DNA of 64,000 nucleotides from Tubulanus polymorphus (GCF_964204645.1 NC_134032.1:6436275-6500274); one strand, 5' to 3'; numbered from the stretch's first letter, positions 1,335 to 64,000 are shown. Program-made: numbers and translations. The notes: a model not told the origin generated them from the letters alone.

Positions 1335-1575
1335 TTCAGTAGGTCATTTAATCAGTTAGTAAGTTAGGCAGTTAGCTAGGCAGGCAGTCAGTCATTCAGT
1401 AAAGGCTATCAGTCAGGTAGGCAGACAAGCAGTCAATCAATCAGGTAGTCAGTCATTCAGCCAGGCAGTGAATGAGTCAGGCAGTAAATTTGGCAGTCGG
1501 TCAGTCAGATAGCTATCAGTCAGTCAGTCACTGAAAACTGTCAGAGAATCAAGTCACTCAGTCAATCAGTAAGTC
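1335..1575. repeat. Degenerate (CAGT/CAGG)n microsatellite
   Basis: Runs such as cagtcagtcagtca and aggcagtcagtc. Confidence 0.8.
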
Positions 1576-8941: not shown

Positions 8942-9069
8942 TGCCTTCGCGCAGACGGGAGGGTTCTTACATTTTGATTAGCTGGTAAGCGGAACTGATG
9001 CTCGAATTAGCGTTTAATTACGTTGTTTGATCTTTATCTAATCTTTTCTTGCACGGACAGCCCGAGTGA

Positions 9070-9270
9070 ACGGTTTTTGTTATCCAAACTCGCGCGCTGC
9101 CTCCTTTTATAGCCCGCGGTTGTCCCCGCCACGCTCTCATTGGCAAGAACAAAAGCCCGGGTACACGTGATTTGTCACGCGTGCCACATGACTTCGAGGT
9201 TGGCTGGGTTCCAGCGACAATGAGGGCGGAACCGGGTAACCGCACGCCAGCTGCAAGGTCGCCGCGGACA
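9070..9270 (-). promoter_or_regulatory. Candidate Pol II promoter on the minus strand
   Basis: CpG-rich patch with TATAAAAG (9104-9111, minus), GC box (9124-9130), CCAAT (9139-9143, minus), CACGTG (9164-9169), CACGCG and CACATG, in canonical order. Confidence 0.55.
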
Positions 9271-9544
9271 CAAGGAAAGACATCAATAAGCGATATCGCT
9301 TATTAAGGTCTATTTTACTTATCTATGATAAATTATAGATAAGTTGAATAAGTAGAAAGGATTCGAACCCTCTGTACTTGCCTAGCATTTTCTCCAACTA
9401 TTCCCTTTGTTTATATTCTACAAGGAGACGAGGGTGGCAGTTTTTCAGAGACTCGATCCATATAAAAGGTTATGTGGACTGAACCAATAAGCATGTTGGC
9501 TGATAAAGGACCAAATGAATTAATTTTTACACGACTTCGATTAT

Positions 9545-9686
9545 AGAAAAACGCAAAACGAAACCTATAGAGCAAAAACGAAAACTTCGTTTTTGCTACT
9601 GCGCAAAAACGAAAATATTCGTTTTTGCTCTATGACTTTTCGTTTTTGCTCCATGATATTCGTTTTGCGCCCTAGCAAAAACGAAC
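9545..9686. repeat. Array of GCAAAAACGAA motifs in both orientations
   Basis: gcaaaaacgaa and ttcgtttttgc alternate about 8 times. Confidence 0.8.
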
Positions 9687-9937
9687 TTGACATGGTATTA
9701 AAATTCGGTTGTCCGGGTGACCATGTATATTCGTTATTGTTGTTGATTGGTGCGTTTTCACGTAGCAGGAAAAAGTCGCAGTTAAAGGTTAGCTGGAAAC
9801 CGCTCGTGAAAACCAGCCTTGCTGTAACACGATGATCTTTTGATTAAAGACAAGCCCGTCTTTACCAGTCTCTATTATTGGTTTCATGATAAAATCTGGA
9901 ACCAAGACGTTGCATCACCTTAGTTCAAAGAAATGGC

Positions 9938-10142
9938 TGTCATACGGAAAATGACCTGGGACTGTAGATCCTCCAAAGGCAGAAAAATAACTCCAACACA
10001 GCTAGATACAAACGAAAAACTGAACCCCACTTTATTGCAGGAAAAGGTTTATATACACAATAATATACATGGTTGATCACCCGTGAAACTGTGATCGGTG
10101 AAATATAACACGTTACATAATACACGCTAGTACTGCGTGACA
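9938..10142 (-). repeat. 3' LTR of the BEL/Pao element
   Basis: Identical by eye to 15807-16011. Confidence 0.97.
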
Positions 10143-10336
10143 CTCCCACCACAGCAGATAAGTTTAAAGATAAATCGTACATAGAATCATACAAAATAGA
10201 AATAGAAGTTCGTATAACAAATATCTCAATGTACGAAATTACAAACAATTTACATATTATTATAATGAACAATTGATTTAACAATCAAACTATTTACATG
10301 TAATTGTAATATAATCTTAATAGAACTGAGACTAAT

Positions 10337-13300
10337 TTAAGCATTATCTGTATCTTGATCTTCCAAAACTTTTAATTGCTTCGAAATTCTATCTTTGGCA
10401 ACTATTGCCGATGCACGAGTAGGGGGACGAGGAGTTTGAGTTTTCTCATCAGTTGAAATTGAATTTTGCACTGGAATGGATTCAACTGGAACATTTACTT
10501 CTAGATAAACTAGTTTAGAAATTGGACGGTTAGTGAAACCATTGGCAGTTTTTAACTCTACTGACCGAATGAGGTCATCCTCCCCGCGCAAAATCTTAGT
10601 AATTATAGCTAATTTCCATCGTAAACGTGGAACATGTGCGTCATGTATTAAAACTAGCATTCCCGGTTTGATATTTTGATAATTATCGCCAACAGATTTA
10701 TGAGATTCTCTCAAATTTACCAGGTACTCTTTATGCCACTTATCCCAAAATTTATCTTGAAGTGTAACCAGGAATTTATATCGATTCTGCAACTCGGATT
10801 CTGACAAATTGGAATAATCAGGATCATTGATATCAAACTCAGGATGAGGCAATGAATTAATTTTCCTTCCACAAACTAAATGAGATGGAGTTAATACATT
10901 AATGTCATTGATATCTGATGTTTCCCTGACTAAGGGTCTGTCATTAATCGTACACTCAATTTCTGTGATTAATGTCGAAAATTCATCTAGAGTTACTTTT
11001 GCCCTTCCTAAACACTTTTTCAGAGCAGACTTTGTCAAACCGATTAATCGCTCGTAGAATCCTCCGTGCCAAGGGCTTCTTTTTGTCATAAAATGCCAAT
11101 CAATGCGTCGCTTTGAAAGGAAATTCGTTGAACTCAAAGCTTCAAATATCTTCTTCAATTCGGAGTTGGCTCCGATAAAGGTACTAGCATTATCAGAGAT
11201 AAGCATCCTTGGCACGGAGCGACGAGCAGTGAACCTACGGAAACATCTTATAAATTCGTCTGTAGAGTTACTAACTACAACCTCACAATGGACTGCTCTG
11301 GTTACAGTGCATGTGAATAATGCAATATAACAATTGCTGCCATTTTTTAAAACGAATGGTCCGCAATAATCCAGTCCACAGTAGTAAAACGGTGGATATC
11401 TAGAAACTCTATACCCAGGAAGTGGAGGTGGATCTGGTAACGTAAAGGGTTTACCAGAAACTTTGCGACATGTAACGCATTTTCTGACCTGAGACTTGAC
11501 TGCTTGGCGTATCTGAGGGATCCAAAAATTTTCTCGTATCTTACACACAGTTGCACTTACACCGAAATGCATGACCTGCAGATGAGCATCATTGATAATC
11601 AAACTAGATAACATACACGATTTTGGTACGAATATCGGGTGTTTAGAATCAAAACTCATATCAGCATTCTGGAGACGACCTTTGCACCTAATAATGCCCT
11701 CGTCGTCTATGTATAATTGTAGTTGATTAACTACAGATAATTTCTTTCTCTTTGTGCCACTCGTCAAGTCCTGAATTATCTCGGCACACAAAGCGGACTG
11801 AAAATATTTGATTATCAATTTTTCAGCATTCACGATTTCTGATGACGATAGTGGTCCGTGATTTCGATCCTCTTTTATTGATTTAAGGTTATGAATAAAG
11901 CGTAAAGCCAGAGCCATGACATTTACCAACTCTGAGTATGACGTGAATTGACTATAATCTATAACTTCTCCCAATTGAAAAGTAAAAATTGAACTTTCCT
12001 TCTTACGAATTGGATCGGAATTTTGAGCCACTACGTAATTGATTGAAATTGTGCTAGGCTGTTCAGGTAGAGGACTCCCATTGGTCAACCAAGCTGGCCC
12101 TTTTAACCATAGATCAGCTGTTAACTCATTGTAATGCACACCGCGAGTTAACAGGTCTGCAGGGTTAACGTTACCTGGACAGTAAAACCAACTGTTTAAA
12201 GAAGTTAATTTTCTAATCTCGGATACCCGGTTATTCACAAATTGTGTCTGTTTCTTTCCTGAATTTAACCAACCCAATACAATCTGACTGTCAGTCCAGT
12301 GAAAGGATTTTATAGGCGAATTAGAACCAATGGTTGGATTAATTGAACGTTGAATGTGATCAGACAACCTGGCTGCAACCGTAGCTGCCATCAATTCTAA
12401 CTTAGGGATGGTCAATTCTTTAACTGGAGCGACACGAGATTTTGACATTATCAAACTAGACTGACTACCAGATTTAAGGTACGCCACTGCTCCATACGCG
12501 CGAGTCGAACTATCACCAAATATGTGTAGTTCTAAATCAGTAGTTCGCAAATTCGGATCTGAGAAATACTTTCTCTGAAATGTCATATCCAAAGCTCGGC
12601 ACAGGTTTTCATTAATAGAGAACCATTGAGAACAAATATCCTTAGGTAACAAATCATCCCATCCGTATGACTGCTTCCATAAATCTTGAAGAAGTAATTT
12701 TGATGGAAGAGTGACGGGAGTCAAAAACCCAAGAGGATCATATATTTTGGCGGTCCTTCTCAAAATAACACGTTTTGTGATAGGAGACTCGTCTATTACC
12801 GCGTGCTTTGGATATGCGATCAAATCTCTATCAGTGTCCCACATGAGACCAAGATTCTTTACAATACGAGAAGGTTCAAGTACACCGTCGTGTTTTGCAA
12901 GCTCACGTAGCTGCGAACTATTCGATGCCCAGCATCGAAAATTGAAATTGGCATTTTCTTTGAGTGATCTCGCTTCTTTATAGAACTGAATTACATCTGA
13001 CACAGAGTTTACGCTTGTACTAATATTGTCGACATATATATCTCGTAAAAGGTTATTCGTAAATTTACCTTTGAAACTGTTTCTAAGATGATATATAATT
13101 GTACTATTTAGCATAAACGGCGAACATTTCGCACCGAAAAGGACTCTCTTAAAGCGATAAACCTCAAATGTACTTTCAGTGTCTTTCGAATCACTAAGCC
13201 AGAGAAAACGCGTAGAATCTCGATCCGATTTATCTAAACCAACGTGCAAAAACGCTTTTTCGATATCAGTGGTTACTGCGCAATCAAATAATCGAAATCG

Positions 13301-23899: not shown

Positions 23900-24870
23900 A
23901 TATCATTAAAAAAATGTTATAGATTTTGAGACACCAGAAAATTCTATTAAAAAAACTAAATCTATTTCAAATAAATCTTATAAGGAAAATGTTAGAAATT
24001 ACATTGATTCACTAGAAATAAAAGATACGATTGAAATTTTAGAAACATTACATAGTAAAATTGGACCTGCAGCTACTATATTTAGATTTTTAAAGGCGCA
24101 ACAAGAAGATTATAGTAAATTTATTGAAATATTGGAAAAAATAATGGATTTTGTAACAGATGTTGAATATCCAAAAATTAGTATTTCTGGAAAAGTAAGT
24201 TTTATAAAATAAGAAAAAATGGAGTATCACATTCAAACACATTCTGGAGAAATAATTTCAAAAACACAAATTAAAGATAAATTAGAAAAAATATTTAATG
24301 AATTTAAACGTCATATTGGAGAAAGATATTTTGAAGGTTCTGGTTTAACATTGAATGAAATTATATTTTCAGATTTAAATGTTTATAATAAAAAAAGAAA
24401 TAAAACATCAAAAAGTATTAAAATGTTTACAAATGATTCACAATTTACAACAGAAAAGGATATCAAAGTATCATCTTATATCAAATTACCATTTGCAACA
24501 AAATCAGTTATAAATGTTCAAAATTGAGATAATAAATGTTTTCTATGGTCAATTATTAGTTGTTTACACCCAACAGTTTGTAGAATAACAGATTATCGGA
24601 AATATAAAACATTATATAAAATTTACCAATATCCAGTAACTATAAAAATGATTACTAAAATAGAAAACGTTGATAATTTAGAAATAAATGTATTCGAATT
24701 AATGCAATTACCAAAGACAAAAGGTGAACATATCAAAGATTACAGATTAGAAGCTTTATATTTAACAAAACATTATGATGATGAAAGTGTTATAGATATA
24801 TTATACTATAAAGAAGATGGTATCATTTGCTGTAAAATATTTCCAATTTCAATGTTCTATTAAATCGCTC
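23900..24870 (+). pseudogene. N-terminal part of a Polinton-type protein-primed DNA polymerase ORF
   Basis: EGSGLTLNEI, SSYIKLP, VINVQN*DNKCFLWSIISCLHP, IENVDNLEINVF; internal stops and frameshifts. Confidence 0.7.
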
Positions 24871-24899
24871 AACAACTGCTGCTTTTTTATCCGATTTTG

Positions 24900-25400
24900 T
24901 TAAAATATTCAATATTGCGGTAATCTAAAAGGTTATGAACAAGTGAATTATCAAATTCTTTTCCATCATCAAATTGTATTTTTTTCTGGTTTTAAAATGT
25001 ACCTGGAAGAAATTTTCTGAAAGCAATTGATGTTTGTACAGCATCTTTTCTGTGGGAAACTCCATACATAACGACTAAAAATATCAATTATATTTGATAT
25101 CCACCAATAATCATTATTATCCTTTTAGAGATTTTTCATATAAATTAAATCTTCCTGCCATTATTGACCTGCATAAATTACCATAGTTTACGAGTTTTGT
25201 ATTTCCTTACAATTCTTTTATGTGTTTTATATGTTGCTTGTTCTAACATATATTCATTTTTATATTTACATTTAACAAAATTTTGCGGAATTATTTTATT
25301 TAATCTATCTTGCTAATTTGTCGCCAAATATTTTTTATAGAAGAATAGGCAACCGAACTCTCAGGATTATAGTATAAATTTCTTAAATATTGTTCTTCTT
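24900..25400 (-). pseudogene. Polinton-type retroviral-like integrase fragment
   Basis: LYYNPES, EQATYKTHKRIVRK, WQEDLI, IDIFSRYVW, IQFDDGKEF on the minus strand with frameshifts. Confidence 0.75.
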
Positions 25401-25464
25401 GATGAGATTTTTTATTCTCTATTTATGTATCATCAATATTAACTATATATATTTTTAATATTGA

Positions 25465-26230
25465 ATACTATGTAATTGGATATTGTTATATTTAATTGCG
25501 CATCAGAAATAATATATAAATGCATTTTATAATTATCGATTCCTTTTTTCATTTTTATGAATGATTGTATTCCATCTTTTGTATTTTCTAATTTTTTACC
25601 AGAACCATGTAATGAATTATCTTCAGTAGTTCTTAAATCTAACCATAATGCAAATTTATTACCAGCTTAATGATTAATTTGATTAATATTACAATCTTCA
25701 GATGATTATATTTTTCATTCATAAAATGTTTTTTGATTTCTATCAAATGATCTATCATTCTCATTCCTTGACAAAATATTTTATTTGCTATACCTTCAAT
25801 AGTTATGTCTACTTTTGATATTTCAGGATTATAACAATTATCAACATATATGGTGCCATTAGAATATATTTTAGTAAAAAATATTAATATACCTTTAATA
25901 GATCTCCCAGGAAAGTTGACATTTTCATTAATTATTTCATCAGCTGAATTAATAGTAACAGTTTTAAATTTATCAATATAATCATATAATAATGACAATC
26001 CTTGATTGTATCGAGTTTTGAATTGTGCTCACAATATTTTCATTAGTTACTGTATCATATTCTAAACATATATTTGATAATTTATAACCCATATCTTTAA
26101 TAACACTCGATAATACAATTTCATTTACAGGTGCAAAAGTTATTCCGAATATTAAATCTTCTTGAATTGCATATTCATATAATGGAGAATTATCATTTAT
26201 TAAAATCTAATGGAATTCCATCTACTTTTT
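25465..26230 (-). pseudogene. Putative Polinton-like major capsid protein, C-terminal part
   Basis: NVNFPGRSIKGILIFF, YNPEISKVDITIEG..NKIF.QGM, DLRTTEDNSLHGSGKKLENTKDGIQ, HLYIISDAQLNI; capsid identity is from recall and context. Confidence 0.55.
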
Positions 26231-53772: not shown

Positions 53773-54015
53773 CGGCCGATTCTACTCGTCGACAATGTCT
53801 ACAACCCCGATTGTCGTCCGATTCTACTCGTCGACAATGTCTACAACCCCGATTGTCGTCCGATTCTACTCGTCGACAATGTCTGCAATCCTGATTGTCG
53901 ACCGATTCTACTCGTCGACAATGTCTACAACCCCGATTGTCGACCGATTCTACTCGTCGACAATGTCTGCAATCCTGATTGTCGACCGATTTTACTCGTC
54001 GACAATGTCTACAAT
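53773..54015. repeat. 42-bp minisatellite, about 6 copies
   Basis: CGATTCTACTCGTCGACAATGTCT(A/G)CAA...GATTGTCG with period 42. Confidence 0.95.
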
Positions 54016-54029
54016 CATGTTTATACAAT

Positions 54030-55015
54030 CTTATATAGAGTGGCTGGGATCGAGGGGCTGCGTGTGTGCGTGGATTACCCTTATATAGTGGCCGGGATCG
54101 AGGGGCTGCGTGTGTGCGTGGATTACCCTTATATAGTGGCCGGGATCGAGGGGCTGCGTGTGTGCGTGGATTACCCTTATATAGAGTGGCCGGGATCGAG
54201 GGGCTGCGTGTGTGCGTGGATCACCCTTATATATAGTGGCTGGGATCGAGGGGCTTTGAGGTGCGTGGATTACGCTTATATAGAGTGGCCGGGATCGAGG
54301 GGCTGCGTGTGTGCGTGGATTACCCTTATATAGTGGCCGGGATCGAGGGGCTGCGTGTGTGCGTGGATTACCCTTATATAGTGGCCGGGATCGAGGGGCT
54401 GCGCGTGTGCGTGGATTACCCTTATATAGAGTGGCCGGGATCGAGGGGCTGCGTGTGTGCGTCGATCACCCTTATATATCGTGGCTGGGATCGAGGGGCC
54501 GCGTGTGTGCGTAGATCACCCTTATATTAAGTGGATGGGATCGAGGGGTGGTGTGTGCGTGGATTACCCTTAATATATAGAGTGGCTGCTATCGAGGGGC
54601 TGCGTGTGTGCGTGGATGACCCTTTATAATGAGTGGCCGGGATCGAGGGGCTGCGTGTGTGCGTGGATCACCCTTATATAAAGTGGCTGGGAGCGAGGGG
54701 TGGTGTGTGCGTGGATTACCCTTATATAGAGTGGCTGCTATCGAGGGGCTGCGTGTGTGCGTGGATTACCCTTATAATGAGTGGCCGGGATCGAGGGGCT
54801 GCGTGTGTGCGTGGTTTACCCTTATATGATGTGGCTGGGATCGAGGGGCCGCGAGTGTGCGTGGATTGTGTGCGTGGATTACCCTTATATGATGTGGCTG
54901 GGATCGAGGGGTGGTGTGTGCGTGGATTACCCTTATATAGAGTGGCCGGGATCGAGGGGCTGCGTGTGCGTGGATTACCCTTATTTAAAGTGGCTGGGAT
55001 CGAGGAGCTGCGTGC
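54030..55015. repeat. 42-44-bp minisatellite, more than 20 copies
   Basis: GTGGC(C/T)GGGATCGAGGGGCTGCGTGTGTGCGTGGATTACCCTTATATA. Confidence 0.97.
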
Positions 55016-55033
55016 TTCCATCAGTTGATTTTC

Positions 55034-55117
55034 ACAATCAGGATTGTAGACATTGTCGACGAGTAGAATCGATCGACAATCGGGGTTGTAGACATTGTCG
55101 ACGAGTAGAATCGGTCG
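55034..55117. repeat. Two inverted copies of the 42-bp unit from 53773-54015
   Basis: TTGTAGACATTGTCGACGAGTAGAATCG occurs twice. Confidence 0.93.
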
Positions 55118-55119
55118 CA

Positions 55120-55425
55120 GCCGAATTACTCCTTTTCTATAAATGTATCTTTGAGCGGGGAACTATTCCACGCTATACTGGACTTGAAACAAAGAGGGGC
55201 TCAAGTCCAAAGAAGTTGTTACTGTACTAATTGTATCATCGGTGATTTGGGTGATGTATATCACTGTCTACTTGTTTGCTCTCGAAATACTGAGTCGAGA
55301 AGGCGTTTTATACCCGCGACAAATACTGGAAACTTCCGAACATTGTTATACTGTGAACTAATAAATTGTTAAGATGAAGTAATAACATCTAACCTTGTAC
55401 AATTTCTCAAAAGCTGTGAATCATT
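55120..55425 (+). mobile_element. Degenerate RTE-X-like LINE 3' end
   Basis: CTNCIIGDLGDVYHCLLVC...RRRFIP Cys/His motif. Confidence 0.65.
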
Positions 55426-55449
55426 GTTAAAAATTATTTTCTTTAAAGT

Positions 55450-56300
55450 TTGTACTGTAGTACAATTCTTTATTCGTAGAGCATTTTATCTTACATACTT
55501 TTTGTTTCGTCAACGCATTTTCATCAATGTGTACCCTTTGTTGAATGTGGTTGAAATTTCCACACCTCCTTACCGTATATCTCAGAACTGATGAGACTAA
55601 TTTCGTTTTCTTTTGAAATCGGGCGAGTCGATTTTGGACTTCAGAATCTTGACAAACAAGGTACACGCCTAATATATTAACATCTACATGTAGCTGTAAT
55701 ATTTGTATAACAGGTCCATTGGACAGACACAAAATGTTAATTTGTGAGTTTAGGTCGAGTTTATCGTTTCGTTATTGCTAATCAATTACAATTCAAGGAG
55801 TTAAGATCAAACCTCGAATAGCGCACTGTTTTCCCAAGACTAACCCAATTGGATTGTTCACTACGGGACCATGGTATGGCCTTAGAAATGTTGCCCGCAC
55901 GCCGTGAGCAGTCAGCAGGACTCGATTGAGCCGCATTGGTACCCAGCTCTAACAGAAAATGCAAAAGCACGATGCCTTATTCCACTGGGCTACTGAAGCG
56001 ACTTCCGAAATTTTCAGAACTTCGATTACGAAAGGCTTTGTTTGTAAATTACTTTAAACTCGCATTACTTTACCCCTAGTTTGTCGTTTGACTTCTTTGT
56101 TTTCTTCATTTGTTTTTCAGTTTTTGTTGTTATAACTATTTTAAGCATAATCCTTTTTCTTTAATCTTAATCCTTTGTCTGATTCTTGTATAAATATTCT
56201 GTTATTTCATTTTGTTCTTAGTACGCCTGATGATGGTTAAGAGCATTTAGCCGAAACGTTGCTCGAAATATAATCATTTTAATATATTTCTTTTCATTTT
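55450..56300 (+). mobile_element. Degenerate Penelope-like element 3' part (GIY-YIG remnant and hammerhead motif)
   Basis: NIY...C.IC...IGQT across frameshifts near 55680-55735; T-rich tract; CTGATGA (56227), stem GGTTAA/TTAGCC, GAAACGTT. Confidence 0.55.
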
Positions 56301-58510: not shown

Positions 58511-60469
58511 AGAATTTATACTTAAAGTTTATTGCAAATGATATGACTTACGATAACAACCATGCAGATTTTCTTGCACCTTCGCCAGCGCTTGTTCATA
58601 CGTGATTTCTTCGCTATTTTCGGCGACGATTTCTCGGGGCAACAAAACCATCGAGACAAACAAGAACGTAACACACCTAATAAAACTGAACCCGGTCTAC
58701 AAAAAGAAACAAATACATTCAACGGAATAAGTAGAGGATACACTTGACGTCATTTCTTTTTAAAGACTGATTTGCTAAGAGTGTGAACGCGAATCGGTGC
58801 CGAAATTGAAAGGAAAGGCCTAGTGATGAAAATGGCTCGAGGTGGAACAAAAATAAGGCTTAAAATTGATACATTGTTTCTGAAAATGTGTGCTCAGCTA
58901 AAAGTTCAACCGGCCGGTTCACTAAATACCCTATAACTTTTTGAGTTTTGATATTCGTTTCTTACATACCATCGTAGTTCTATTCTGGGTAAGTTTCTCT
59001 CATGACGGTCTTCTCTGACTACGCAGCTGACTGTCTGTGCGGGACTTTATGTAGTTACTTACGGCGTGACATACAAATGCATGAAATGGACCGGGAAAAC
59101 TATCATTTAGTATTTAAAGACTCACCGTACAGGTATTCTATTGGTGTGGTATTCAATTTGTAGCTCCAACAATGAAATAGCCCAACGTACAATACAGTTA
59201 TTTTCCATCGCGTTTATAAAGTATAAGCCGACCTTCGCAGAGCTCTGTTGATTTTCAACCCCTGTGCCCTTTAAAAAGAAAATTTTAAAATTTGGGGGGG
59301 GGGGACGGGGCAATTTTTCCACTTAAATGAAAAAATGAAATAAAATTTGTCCCGAGAAATAATGCCCCTGAAATATTCCATAATGTAGAAGAAATGTCCC
59401 AGTCCATCAGTACTAATTAAGTAAGTTTCACATTAAAATAACACCAGAGAACAAACATGGTTATTGTGTAAATTGCGCACTAACCATAGAAAAAGAATTC
59501 ATTGAGTGGCCATGAGCATTATAGGCCTAGAATTTTGGCACTAATTAATTTTGCCTACAGAGAACACGTGAACTCATTGCATGACACTTCAAATTCAAGA
59601 AAATTTAACAATTCAATCAAATGCGTATTAAAATCATCAATGGAGTAGATAATGAATAGTTATCAGGTAGTTATCAGGTATGCATAATTACTTAGATGAT
59701 ACGTCAAATATAAGAAGGTTTAAAATTTATAAAACAAACCAGCTAATCAAATGGAGATCTTAAACTTTTGCGTTCGCGAGTGTATGTGTGACTTTCTTAA
59801 GTCAGGTTGTGAAAATGTCATCGTGGCATGAAATAGGGGCCTGGGCATTGGGCCCCTTGGACCCACCCATGCCAGTTCATATTTATACAGACCTGATTAG
59901 AATAAGAGCAATATATATATAGGCATACTCGTGGTATAGTACCTGTCTTGACCTGTATATATTTTGAATATATTATTCGACCTACGTAGAATATGTAATT
60001 TTCTTTATTAAGCTTACAGTTATTTTATATATAACCCGATAATGATGCGGTACAGATCGACTCCACAGCTTTACCAAAACGTATTGGGCGTCGACAGAAG
60101 AACTGCAGCATTTTGATTTGAAACGCAGTCTCAAATGTTTTGTGACTTTCTCAAAATGTATCAAAAATTTAACTAGTTTTTAGTTCATAAGTCCTCAAAT
60201 ATTCATAAATGAACAGTTAAAAATTGTTGAAACATGTCGACTCTGCCGTAAAATCAACCTATTAACCGTCCGGAATGTGGGATAATGTCGGGCTTTAGAG
60301 AACATAATGCCCCCGAGGTCTTCACATTTACAGGAAAGATTACGTAAGTGATCCACGCGCAGCGCGCGATAGGCGCACAATAGAAATCTGAGCCGCTCGT
60401 TCTTTGAGTGTCACCAATTAAGAGGACCGCTATTGTGAAAATTGACCTTGTGCACAGATATAAATTACA

Positions 60470-60800
60470 TCGTTTGCGCGGATATTGCGCGACGAGCATT
60501 GTTGGCGCGGTCGACGACAGATCAACCGGTATTAGTAAACCGCGCAAATTACCGTGCTCGGAATTTGCGCGGGATCTTGGCACGGTCGACGACAGACCAA
60601 CCGGTATTAGTAAACCGCGCAAATTACCGTGCTCGGAACTTGCGCGGGATGTTGGCGCGGTCGACTACAGACCAACCGGTATTAGTAAACCGCGCAAATT
60701 ACCGTGCTCGGAACTTGCGCGGGATGTTGGCGCGGTAGGCCAACCGGTATTAGTATACCGCGCGAATTACCGTGCTCGGAACTATTAGTAAACTGCGCGA
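60470..60800. repeat. 75-bp GC-rich tandem repeat (about 4 copies), each with an internal hairpin
   Basis: Units start at 60501, 60576, 60651 and 60726; CCGCGCAAATT-ACCGTGCTCGG-AA(T/C)TTGCGCGG. Confidence 0.95.
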
Positions 60801-60944
60801 ATTAAACTGACGCGGTTGGTCAAATACGCGATAAATTAGTAATTATTATCATGTTAGACCTTAAGCTTATAAAATACGGCGCGGTCGCGGGAAAAATGAC
60901 GATAAAATCCGAACAAGTCCATTATTCTTAATTTACCGGGTGAT

Positions 60945-61190
60945 CAGTGTCCGTTATCATTAATTGACTAACTAGCGTTGACTTACTAATTTTAAGTGAC
61001 TTACTAGGCCGGGGTTTACGGTCCGATAATTTTAAGGGTTTATAAGGTCCGTTATCATTAATTGACTAACTAGTGGTTTAAGGTCCGATAATTTTAAGTG
61101 ACTTACTAGGCCGGCGTTTACGGGCCGATAATTTTAATGGTTTATAAGGTTTTATTGATAATTGACTAACTAGTAGCTTTAAGTCCGATT
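60945..61190. repeat. Modular degenerate repeat with about 100-bp period
   Basis: GTCCGTTATCATTAATTGACTAACTAG, CCGATAATTTTAA and TAAGTGACTTACTAGGCCGG each occur 2-3 times. Confidence 0.8.
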
Positions 61191-61340
61191 ATGGTGAATA
61201 ATATTAATTGCTAGTAGATAATTAGTCTAAGAACACCAAATAAATAGCTAGGCGATTTATTATCTCATTCAAATCCGTTTTATTCATCGTACAGTTCAGT
61301 TTCATCTACAATAGTTTCATCCGTTTTCCTGTATATCATT

Positions 61341-62956
61341 ATGCATGCAGCAGAGAGAAATGCATGGTTAGCCGTCGAACGAGCTTTGGACCGATATAAA
61401 ACTGTGTCGGGGAATGATTGCGTAGCAACGGCCATGTATTTTGACAGGAGTGAGGAAAAATGTCTGATGGTAGTGCATGGCACTCCAAAATTTAAGGATT
61501 TGATAAAAAAACATGGAATTCACCAGCGAGAAAGGGCAAGTCACATCAGTAGAAGAAAGTGAATCGAAAAAGACATTACCCAATATTACGGAAAAATATG
61601 GGAAGCGTCTAAGTCAACTCTCAACCGACGAGGCCAGAGGGCTACTTTCGTCGTTGGTATATTTTAGCCGCCAAATCGACGGAATGAGCAAGGAAGTTAA
61701 CCCCAAGTGGGGTAAAGAAGAAGCTAGGGTACCGTGGTGGCCATCGGAGTGGCCTTGGTCAAATCCGAAATCTGATGTCAGACCGAAAACGGCAAGACGG
61801 ACAAAGTGGGCCGATGCTGTAAGAGAAGCCTGCCGCGCGGCTTATAATCATCACAATCTGGTCCATCTTACTGGTAAGTAAAAAATATTATATTTCATCT
61901 TTTACGTAGGCTATCTTCTTATGAAAATTACATAATGTGCCGAGTAATTTTCATAACTTTCAAAGCCCGATTAAACACGAAAAACGCGCGCGACCGTTTT
62001 GCCGTTTCAATTTAAGTAGACCTACCCAGAAATATTTATTTCTAGGAAAATTAATTCAATATCTACGACTGTATTTTTTTTGTCATTTTTCTATGGGCGT
62101 AATAGAAAACTTAGGTGTCTCGTACCTATGCTTGTCAAATGACAAGAAAATTCAAAACCCAATCAATGAATCTAACTAAAGTGCCGCCAGACATAATTTC
62201 TTGAAAAATTTATTCATTCTAACGTCGGAATTTTGTATATTTTTGTTTTTAAAATTTGCTTCTTATTTAAATTTAAGGCGATACGACAGAGTTAGGCCTG
62301 CCAGTAATTCCAGCATCAGTAGTACGTCCAACACCAGCACCACGTCCCCGAGTAATCTCAGCTGTACCTACTGCAGAAACTTCAGCACCAGTAATAGTGC
62401 AGCCAATACCAGCGCCAGTAATAGTACAGCCAATACCAGCACCAAGAAAACAGGGCCCATTTGATTCTGCAGAAGTTGAGCAACAGTTGTTGGATTTTGT
62501 AGACAATGGATCAGTGGGAGAAGTAGTAAGCTTCGACTGCTCTGCACTTGAAGGTATTATTGAATTAAGATAAAGTAATATTGAATTGTGATCATTGAGT
62601 GTTGTATAGATTCATGTGCATTCCTTTCCAAATTTTGTTATTTTCCATATATTTGTATTTTAGAAGCGTTCCATTCAACTGCAATGACTAACCAGCTCCA
62701 GACAAGCAACAGTGATGTGTCGACTGCAGTGTCTCAGTCTGTGGAAAATGTACCAGAAGGTAAATATAGTCAACTTTATAAGCAGGGGCTTGAGAGAGTT
62801 CTATAATACCGTGGTGTCATCATTGCCCAGAATAGGATTTTGCTTAAAATAAGCTTTTTGTGAAAAATATTTATATGTTTTTCAGAAATAAGATGCAGTA
62901 GCAGAAAGAGAAAGCTGACAGAGAAGATGTCATCATACCAAATTAAAAGAAAATGA
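61341..62956 (+). CDS. Four-exon gene for a divergent NRF1/EWG-like DNA-binding protein (exons 61341-61873, 62278-62553, 62664-62759, 62886-62956); one frameshift in an A7 run at 61505-61511
   Basis: RALDRYKTVSG...VHGTPKFKDLIKK and PKWGKEEARVPWWPSEWPWSNPKSDVR...WADAVREACRAAYNHH match NRF1 motifs recalled as ATLDEYTTRVG, VFGAAPLENVVRK and PGWGKESCKPIWWPEDIPWANVRSDVR...WTQALRTIVKNCYKQH. GT-AG phase-1 introns, open exons of 276 and 96 nt, basic tail RKRKL, AATAAA near 62992. Confidence 0.8.
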
Positions 62957-63256
62957 GAATTCTGTTGTTATTATAATGTAAATTTTTTCAAAATAAAATA
63001 TTTGAAGTAACGTACATAAATTTCCTTCCTTCGGTAATTGTAGACTTGTTGACATGTGATCACCACTTAAAGGACTCAAATGACAACACAGTAGCAGAAT
63101 ATAGAGAAAATGCTAGACCAGCAGAGCACTTTAATCCTGTGATCTACCAATAAGTCATTAATTTTATAACATCACTGCAAATTTATTTCCTTTTAACAAT
63201 TAAGTAATACAGCTCATAATCCTGAAGTGTTAGAGCATATAATCCACTTGACACAT

Positions 63257-63950
63257 TTAAGATAGTTTTTTACCACGGTTCTTGATTGCCAGAAACAATG
63301 CAATGTGGCGTATGAAGTTTTCCTGAGACATATATGCTAGCTGAGATTTCAACTTTATTAATCCAGCATTAGCTTGTTCATTCAATTGGGAAATAATACT
63401 TCTGATGTCATGGTTGGTATGATAAGTATCCACACAGTATGCTTTTGAACAACTGAAAAGAAAACATACATAAACATATAACAACAATTGGCAGTTGAAC
63501 AATGTTATAATTGTAGGGCAAGAAATGTTTTGAATGTATTGATCCACAGCTAGATTTTCGTAGTAACTGAAAATGTTTCGTAGTATTTAGAAATGTTCTT
63601 AATGTTGTTTCCGTATGCGTGGGGGTTACGTTAAAGCCGTCAGACAAGAACGTACTAGTAGTAAGAATTACGAAAGTTCTTGTTTGATGCTTTCATCTAC
63701 CAACGCAAACCATAAATCAGTCTATAAACAACAATTCTTTCTCGGTTCTTCTGCTTGAGATCTGGCAAACATTCAGAAAATCTTTATTTAAAACTTTTAA
63801 ATAGTTGGAACCATATTTGGTTGGGTCGGAACAATGTGTATTTATAATGAGGGTCGTGAAGGGATCACGCTGATACTTGATGATATTCCCAGCTACTTTC
63901 CGTAAAAGGAAAAACCGGAAGTTTAGGAAGATGTGGTTGTTTTGCTTATC
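63257..63950 (-). pseudogene. 3' part of a KDZ (Kyakuja-Dileera-Zisupton)-type transposase gene, decayed; probably continues beyond the window
   Basis: Terminal exon 63452-63257 after a TTTTCAG acceptor: CSKAY...SQLNEQANAGL..LKSQLAYMSQENF..H..LFL..KN; weak upstream traces (PFTTL, VDQ.H..H) with frameshifts. Confidence 0.65.
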
Positions 63951-64000
63951 CTGTATTAAAATAGAATTAGTTAAATTGTAGATAAAATAATTAGTATAAG

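Follow-up and report, generated by a model that had tools for sequence, protein, structure and literature searches.

To our knowledge, few superfamilies of eukaryotic DNA transposons are as poorly characterized as KDZ, in which well-defined ends were for a long time available for Zisupton only, a situation that has changed just recently. Here, we describe two-gene transposons that we assign to this superfamily. The stretch under study is a 64,000-nt window (G000:C8:6436275-6500274) of the 268-Mb genome of the nemertean Tubulanus polymorphus. We consider it likely that this window holds the left 3.5 kb of a defective two-gene KDZ cut-and-paste transposon, in which one gene encodes the transposase and the other an accessory protein with an NRF1 domain that probably binds subterminal sites of the element.

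Among the described KDZ elements, fungal Kyakuja makes 7-bp target-site duplications (TSDs) and has CA..TG ends without terminal inverted repeats (TIRs), whereas Zisupton and Dileera make 8-bp TSDs (Kojima 2025, PMC12730594). The Tubulanus elements agree with Kyakuja, and not with Zisupton or Dileera, in the 7-bp length of their TSDs. They also share with Kyakuja a 5' end that begins with CA and a transposase with Pfam KDZ and a CxC cysteine cluster, while their multi-exonic transposase gene is like that of metazoan Zisupton-like elements (PMC9297572). They differ from fungal Kyakuja in having TIRs of up to 215 bp and in ending with ...GCTC-3'. In addition, the second gene of fungal KDZ elements is of the TET/JBP type, whereas here it encodes an NRF1-type DNA-binding protein, and the hosts are bilaterian animals.

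Two other superfamilies offer a working analogy. PIF/Harbinger elements likewise hold two genes within their TIRs, one for a sequence-specific DNA-binding protein (a function that is inferred here), together with short subterminal motifs. However, their transposase belongs to an unrelated superfamily, their TSD is 3 bp instead of 7 bp, and their DNA-binding protein has a Myb/SANT fold that is unrelated to the NRF1 type; in Pfam searches, the accessory exons gave no Myb/SANT match. In En/Spm (CACTA) elements, either end is rich in short subterminal repeats that occur in both orientations, and a second element-encoded protein is proposed to bind them. They differ in transposase superfamily, in 3-bp TSDs, in CACTA termini, and in that TnpA arises by alternative splicing of a shared transcription unit; the Tubulanus elements have two separate genes. 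Finally, the N-terminal half of the accessory protein has dimerization and DNA-binding domains homologous to those of NRF1, EWG, and P3A2. In NRF1, every monomer recognizes one TGCGC half-site by means of R206, N242, and R244 (Liu et al. 2023, PMC10810270), and the candidate sites in the transposon resemble that half-site. Unlike these host factors, the transposon-borne genes exist in multiple copies, are enclosed by TIRs, and are not orthologues.

Whole elements and their ends

We fetched and compared 20 kb around ten gene pairs. Three recent copy pairs delimit whole elements, as follows:

Family 1: copies on C3 (9303 bp) and C2 (9654 bp) that share 96% identity; the TIR is 215 bp long (97.7% in the copy on C3)
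Family 2: copies on C10 (7616 bp) and C2 (7010 bp), a recent copy pair
Family 3: copies on C2 (8267 bp) and C5 (8654 bp), a recent copy pair

Within each pair, similarity breaks off at the same bases. The termini in all three families read 5'-CAGGTATA(A/T/G)AA... and ...TTTTATAGCTC-3' (short form of the 3' end, TATAGCTC), and both genes lie inside these shared ends. Six elements from the three families have a 7-bp TSD (CAGTAGG, CACAATC, TATATTT, CATTGAC/CATTGAG, AACGATG, and ATACATC); five of the TSDs are perfect and one matches at 6/7 positions. Family 1 is also represented by a 4.65-kb deletion derivative (C4:15810391-15815040) and by a 257-bp derivative made of two TIR halves (C9:6095207-6095463), which is like a miniature inverted-repeat transposable element. 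With TIRs that are 97 to 99% identical, these derivatives indicate that Family 1 elements are mobile and were active fairly recently, and they are evidence that non-autonomous copies have probably been mobilized in trans.

Pairing of the two genes in Tubulanus and in other animals

A six-frame search of the Tubulanus genome with the NRF1-like exon returned 20 loci at 35 to 58% identity. One of these, at C3:7491174-7492411, is the true NRF1 orthologue, a multi-exon gene with exon scores of 95.9, 68.1, and 67 bits. The remaining 19 are of the transposon type, and the gene in the window belongs with these diverged paralogues: it is neither single-copy nor best by reciprocal similarity, as an NRF1 orthologue should be. 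Searches with two transposase exons found 15 and 14 further loci, at 51 to 65% and 49 to 65% identity, respectively. In 12 of the 19 transposon-type loci, a transposase lies convergent within 4 kb, and in a 13th it is 8 kb away, compared with a chance expectation of about 0.02 such pairs (16 transposase sites in 268 Mb). An earlier note on this window, made from its sequence alone, had proposed that an NRF1-like gene and a KDZ-like transposase form one element, and had named two findings that would speak against it, namely a single-copy NRF1-like gene and transposase copies that never adjoin such a gene. The opposite was found on both counts, and the copy pairs, with their shared ends, TIRs, and 7-bp TSDs enclosing both genes, bear out the idea of one element. 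Two near-identical NRF1-like frames on C3, at 14153568-14153876 (-) and 14175016-14175327 (+), lie inverted and 21 kb apart (L011 and L012). No transposase exon was detected near either, and they may represent a rearranged or transposase-less element.

The pairing extends beyond nemerteans. The closest full-length transposase outside Tubulanus is in Branchiostoma floridae x belcheri (L045), where a 644-amino-acid open reading frame (ORF) lies 1.1 kb downstream on the same strand, in tandem; its first 190 residues match PF10491, the Pfam model Nrf1_DNA-bind (E=1.8e-14, 54.4 bits). In B. lanceolatum (L055), a gene named "nuclear respiratory factor 1-like" lies within an intron of a PKA regulatory-subunit gene, 1.7 kb downstream of a KDZ gene and in tandem with it. 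In the hemichordate Glandiceps talaboti (L053), an NRF1-like frame is convergent, 1.3 kb past the transposase. Two loci (L051 and L052) and three transcript contigs (L046-L048) were too short to judge neighbors. The pairing thus recurs across diverged families and three phyla, and the paired subclade is either old enough for spiralians and deuterostomes to share or has been transferred between them.

Several Branchiostoma proteins (P0155-P0157; L055:10001-12029) carry the names "GTPase regulator Nrf1," "NRF1," and "nuclear respiratory factor 1-like." They are 57 to 65% identical to the transposon-borne protein of L045, and one of them adjoins a KDZ gene. These are probably transposon genes with a misleading name. 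A 3.3-Mb eukaryotic contig from an ENA assembly (L054) has a weak NRF1-like match at 1340-1549 (-) (E=9e-5), 7.4 kb upstream of a KDZ gene at 8962-11416 (+), which is too weak to count as a pair.

Assignment of the transposase

Judged by profile matches, we place the transposase in the KDZ superfamily, within the clade that has CxC4, a cysteine cluster associated with KDZ transposases. Exons were searched singly, and database gene models were used as the spliced forms. A profile built from the exon 3 sequences of five copies (A1), compared with 1.84 billion representative proteins, matched 456 proteins, and we tested ten long matches against the Pfam models KDZ and CxC4. Half of them passed the 26.6-bit cut-off of PF18758 (KDZ), with scores of 27.7 (P0001), 35.0 (P0012), 26.8 (P0014), 35.3 (P0016), and 27.7 (P0062). 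The 26.9-bit cut-off of PF18717 (CxC4) was also passed by five of the ten (P0004, P0016, P0034, P0126, and P0134). P0001 is a T. polymorphus RefSeq model that maps at 99 to 100% to the Family 3 copy on C5, so one of the paired elements itself passes the family test. P0004 is the amphioxus transposase gene that adjoins an NRF1-like gene.

The copy in the window is linked to KDZ-positive proteins through its last exon (56 to 65% identity at 15 other loci), and in the full-length relatives Pfam KDZ spans the part that matches this exon. A language-model look-up with the last exon returned neighbors that include a KDZ cluster, which we treat as a lead only. The motifs ..CDG(V/I)DLGF.., ..VYDN(A/C)C.., and ..NEQAN.. 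are compatible with a putative DDE triad. When transposase exon 1 and the accessory ORF of Family 1 were used as queries in word-index protein searches, no match turned up within the length range searched.

The accessory protein and the sites at the element ends

Against a cut-off of 23.5 bits, PF10491 scored 47.7 bits (E=2e-12) in the second half of accessory exon 1 of the window copy, and 51.5, 43.6, and 51.6 bits in Families 1, 2, and 3, where the match covers profile positions 47-208 of 213. In all, four Tubulanus families and amphioxus are above the cut-off. A profile of ten accessory proteins (A3) matched human NRF1 chain 8K4L at positions 76-227 (E=1.2e-18), which covers the whole DNA-binding domain and part of the dimerization domain. 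Together, the Pfam and 8K4L matches are in line with the NRF1 fold that the earlier note had ascribed to this protein.

Over the domain, the transposon copies are about 20 to 35% identical to NRF1. Among the Tubulanus families examined, all but two degenerate copies keep the equivalents of R206 and N242. At the R244 position, Families 1-3 have R; the window copy and one other group have K. The proteins from amphioxus and Glandiceps are diverged or show gaps in the N242/R244 stretch. Beyond the domain, families have in common the exon-1 boundary (..LTG followed by gt) and a basic C-terminal tail, RKRKxTEKMxxYxxKRK.

Counts of k-mers revealed short, family-specific motifs that are nearly confined to the ends of the elements:

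Family 1: TGCTCGG, with 21/22 copies within about 480 bp of an end
Family 2: GCGCGAG and TTTGCGCG
Family 3: TGCTCA
Window copy: TGCGCG and TGCTCG

All of these motifs fit TGC(G/T)C(A/G), or TGCKCR. This site occurs 13 to 42 times per kb in the terminal 2x300 bp, compared with 0.3 to 1.6 inside the elements and 1.15 in flanking DNA. The resulting enrichment is 10-35 fold and family-specific, and it is partly circular, as the very ends that were scored had supplied the TGCKCR pattern. The likeness of the end motifs to the NRF1 half-site TGCGC is independent of that circularity. In Family 3, the ends contain TGCTCATGAGCA and TGCGCATGAGCA, which are one to two bases off the NRF1 palindrome TGCGCATGCGCA.

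The window copy

The part of the element that lies in the window has the following features:

60455..60530, + strand: left terminus and TIR, which starts CAGATATAAATTAC...
60500..60783, + strand: subterminal array, a 75-bp tandem repeat in 3.9 copies (Tandem Repeats Finder, TRF)
60949..61189, + strand: internal 102-bp tandem repeat in 2.4 copies, located after the 75-bp array and before the accessory gene (TRF)
61341-62956, + strand: accessory gene in four exons, with all introns GT-AG and phase 1
61341..61873, + strand: accessory exon 1, NRF1-like dimerization and DNA-binding domain (Pfam PF10491 match at 61513-61875)
62278..62553, + strand: accessory exon 2, a Pro-rich linker and then the motif ...VEQQLLDFVDNGSVGEVVSFDCSALE (splice sites and frame)
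62664..62759, + strand: accessory exon 3 (GT-AG boundaries and phase-1 continuity)
62886..62956, + strand: accessory exon 4, the basic tail RKRKLTEKMSSYQIKRK and then the stop codon (tail conserved in Families 2 and 4)
63257..63452, - strand: last exon of the transposase, ..CSKAYCVDTYHTNHD..SQLNEQANAGL..FLAIKNRGKKLS and then the stop codon (alignment with other loci)
63453..64000, - strand: transposase intron, with the next upstream exon at window 64913-64990, past the window (tblastn with Family 2 exons)

The start at 60455 was set by a solo end at C3:388496-388541, whose match opens at exactly that base, and the opening CAGATATAAATTAC... resembles the family termini CAGGTATA(A/T/G)AA. Positions 60458-60530 match C8:6517534-6517601 (minus strand) at 84% in inverted orientation. 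Every 75-bp unit of the subterminal array contains CGCGCA..TGCTCG..TGCGCG sites and an 11-nt inverted repeat, CCGCGCAAATT / AAYTTGCGCGG, with arms 11 nt apart. The array occurs again, inverted, at C8:6517220-6517564, where the motif CTCGGAAYTTGCGCGG is repeated five times at 68-bp spacing and 90% identity. For the 102-bp repeat, the genome search gave no match elsewhere. The exon-2 motif VEQQLLDFVDNGSVGEVVSFDCSALE has a Family 1 counterpart, IEDAIMNCVENGSLSEVCSFEMTLL, and the Family 2 version of the C-terminal tail is NRKRKPTEKMSEYLKKRK. The stop codons of the accessory gene and the transposase are 300 bp apart, in convergent orientation. An ORF at 63720-63947 (-) was considered as a transposase exon and rejected: it is intron, and the true exon is at 64913-64990. 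All four features that the earlier note had described in this stretch were recovered, namely the GC-rich hairpin repeats (the 75-bp array with its 11-nt inverted repeat), the second repeat block, the spliced NRF1/EWG-like gene on the plus strand, and the convergent transposase 3' end 300 bp further on. Its supposition that the 75-bp repeat belongs to the same element fits with the inverted recurrence of that repeat at the far end of this copy.

Extending the window to the right, as that note had advised, located the inverted array and the rest of the transposase. Window 63257-66340 holds exons 4-6 along with the latter half of exon 3, and window 78152-79658 holds exons 1 and 2 plus the first half of exon 3. 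Because the halves of exon 3 are so far apart, we conclude that an insertion of about 11.8 kb (window ~66358-78152), which contains retroelement ORFs, splits this exon. The insertion (L003:6358-10000 and L024) has gag-like (+), reverse transcriptase/RNase H (-), and integrase (-) ORFs; with ORFs on differing strands, it may be composed of more than one retroelement. Including this nested insertion, the copy is about 20.9 kb long, from 60455 to about 81330.

Accessory exon 1 switches frame at an A7 run (61505-61511), and the homologous exon of intact relatives is a single open frame. The change reflects either a frameshift or a homopolymer assembly error. With this frame change and a split transposase, the window copy is defective. 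In this respect, the earlier note needs correcting. A simple pattern search of the extended copy found no canonical termini. At the DNA level, the copy is single-copy but for a few fragments and solo ends. The only other traces are a lone 210-bp fragment with 88% DNA identity to the NRF1-like exon of the window (C5:14265862-14266071; L002) and solo ends at C3:388430-388541 and C7:12733421-12733638.

Discussion

Our results make it likely that the window copy and its relatives are two-gene KDZ transposons with a DNA-binding accessory protein. We propose that this protein, probably as a dimer like NRF1, would bind the TGC(G/T)C(A/G) sites in both subterminal regions. Once bound, it could mark or pair the ends of the element and recruit the transposase, by analogy with the Myb-like protein of PIF/Harbinger and TnpA of En/Spm. 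There are results that weigh against this interpretation. No single transposase exon, whether from the window copy or from Families 1-3, reaches Pfam KDZ or any Pfam transposase model. Each long copy inspected carries at least one frameshift, and for this reason no copy is demonstrably autonomous. For the window copy, a predicted right terminus and the TSD TTGTGCA were searched for and not found, so that its TSD is unconfirmed. More distant KDZ genes (L049 and L050) have no NRF1-like neighbor within 10 kb, which means that the pairing marks a subclade only. No TGCKCR clusters were seen around the amphioxus and Glandiceps pairs, where element ends were not found, and the circularity of the motif enrichment noted above belongs on the same side.

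Some of these points have been read in the light of other explanations. A transposase from hAT7, Dada, or some other DDE superfamily that makes 7-bp TSDs would account for the failure of single exons to reach Pfam KDZ, and for the fact that the KDZ model, run over the whole genome, matched at other loci only. Yet the Family 3 RefSeq model and four other full-length relatives are above the KDZ cut-off, five relatives are above that for CxC4, the protein-atlas neighbors include a KDZ cluster, and no hAT or other transposase family was matched, all of which makes a non-KDZ identity very improbable. The KDZ-like label given in the earlier note therefore stands for the full-length relatives, the RefSeq model among them, though not for exons taken singly, which stay below Pfam KDZ. 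It is even less probable that a host gene happens to sit beside a transposon, or that the two are a domesticated host pair like HARBI1/NAIF1. That the window copy has no DNA-level counterpart but one 210-bp fragment would suit such a scenario. Against it are the 13 pairs in one genome, the TIRs and TSDs that enclose both genes, copies at non-syntenic sites, the deletion derivatives, and a true NRF1 orthologue elsewhere (C3:7491174-7492411) with far higher Pfam scores.

A more serious alternative, albeit one that we regard as unlikely, is that the NRF1-like gene is a captured host passenger or a regulator, of the element or of host genes, with no role in the recognition of ends. Passenger genes such as TET/JBP are a known cargo of KDZ elements (PMC12730594), and a regulatory role has been proposed for those on fungal KDZ elements. 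Gene order also varies by lineage: the two genes are in tandem in amphioxus but converge in Tubulanus and Glandiceps. The role of the accessory protein at the ends is predicted from sequence. A passenger, however, would not be expected to remain paired across families with just 35 to 58% protein identity and across three phyla, or to retain its DNA-contact residues and a conserved C-terminal tail. Nor would it explain why the ends of each family are packed with motifs like the NRF1 half-site. We therefore favor an accessory protein that probably acts at the ends of the element.

The consequences of this interpretation concern both KDZ and NRF1. For KDZ, complete animal elements have now been delimited by their ends, TIRs, and 7-bp TSDs. 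In one subclade, present in nemerteans, cephalochordates, and hemichordates, the elements have an additional gene whose product is an NRF1-type DNA-binding protein, and the superfamily thereby gains a testable two-component mechanism. A full-text search found no paper linking KDZ, Kyakuja, Dileera, or Zisupton with NRF1 or Nrf1_DNA-bind, although Repbase and Dfam were outside its reach; within that range, no description of the pairing was found, and the earlier note likewise knew of none. For NRF1, a domain that is usually viewed as part of a single-copy transcription factor appears to have a second life as a transposon protein. Extra gene models called "NRF1" or "NRF1-like," for example in Branchiostoma, would be explained as transposon genes instead of paralogues of the respiratory regulator. 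This raises the question of whether the host factor or the transposon protein came first. Speculatively, the NRF1/EWG domain may serve, or may have served at first, to recognize the ends of elements in an ancient KDZ lineage of bilaterians, with NRF1 descended from a domesticated accessory gene of such an element or the domain moved between host and transposon. We think this origin improbable on present evidence. If the domain did begin in this way, the elements would spread arrays of NRF1-like sites through genomes.

Sequence neighboring the element

The left end of the window copy abuts an unrelated high-copy repeat that extends from 60230, or from further left, to about 60450. At least 40 copies at 95 to 97% identity, scored out of 172 candidates, document this repeat, and all scored copies stop at 60446/60450. 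A start at 60340, as given in the earlier note, is thus too far to the left, since the element begins at 60455 and the first 115 bp belong to this other repeat. The GC-rich palindrome at 60356-60375 is likewise part of the neighboring repeat and lies outside the transposon. A left end near 60291, which has a weak likeness to the family terminus, was rejected because 60230-60450 is this high-copy repeat. Elsewhere in the window, the composition profile shows a very AT-rich segment at 24001-26000 (GC 0.23) and a GC-rich segment at 54001-56000 (GC 0.47) with a strong G skew of 0.23.

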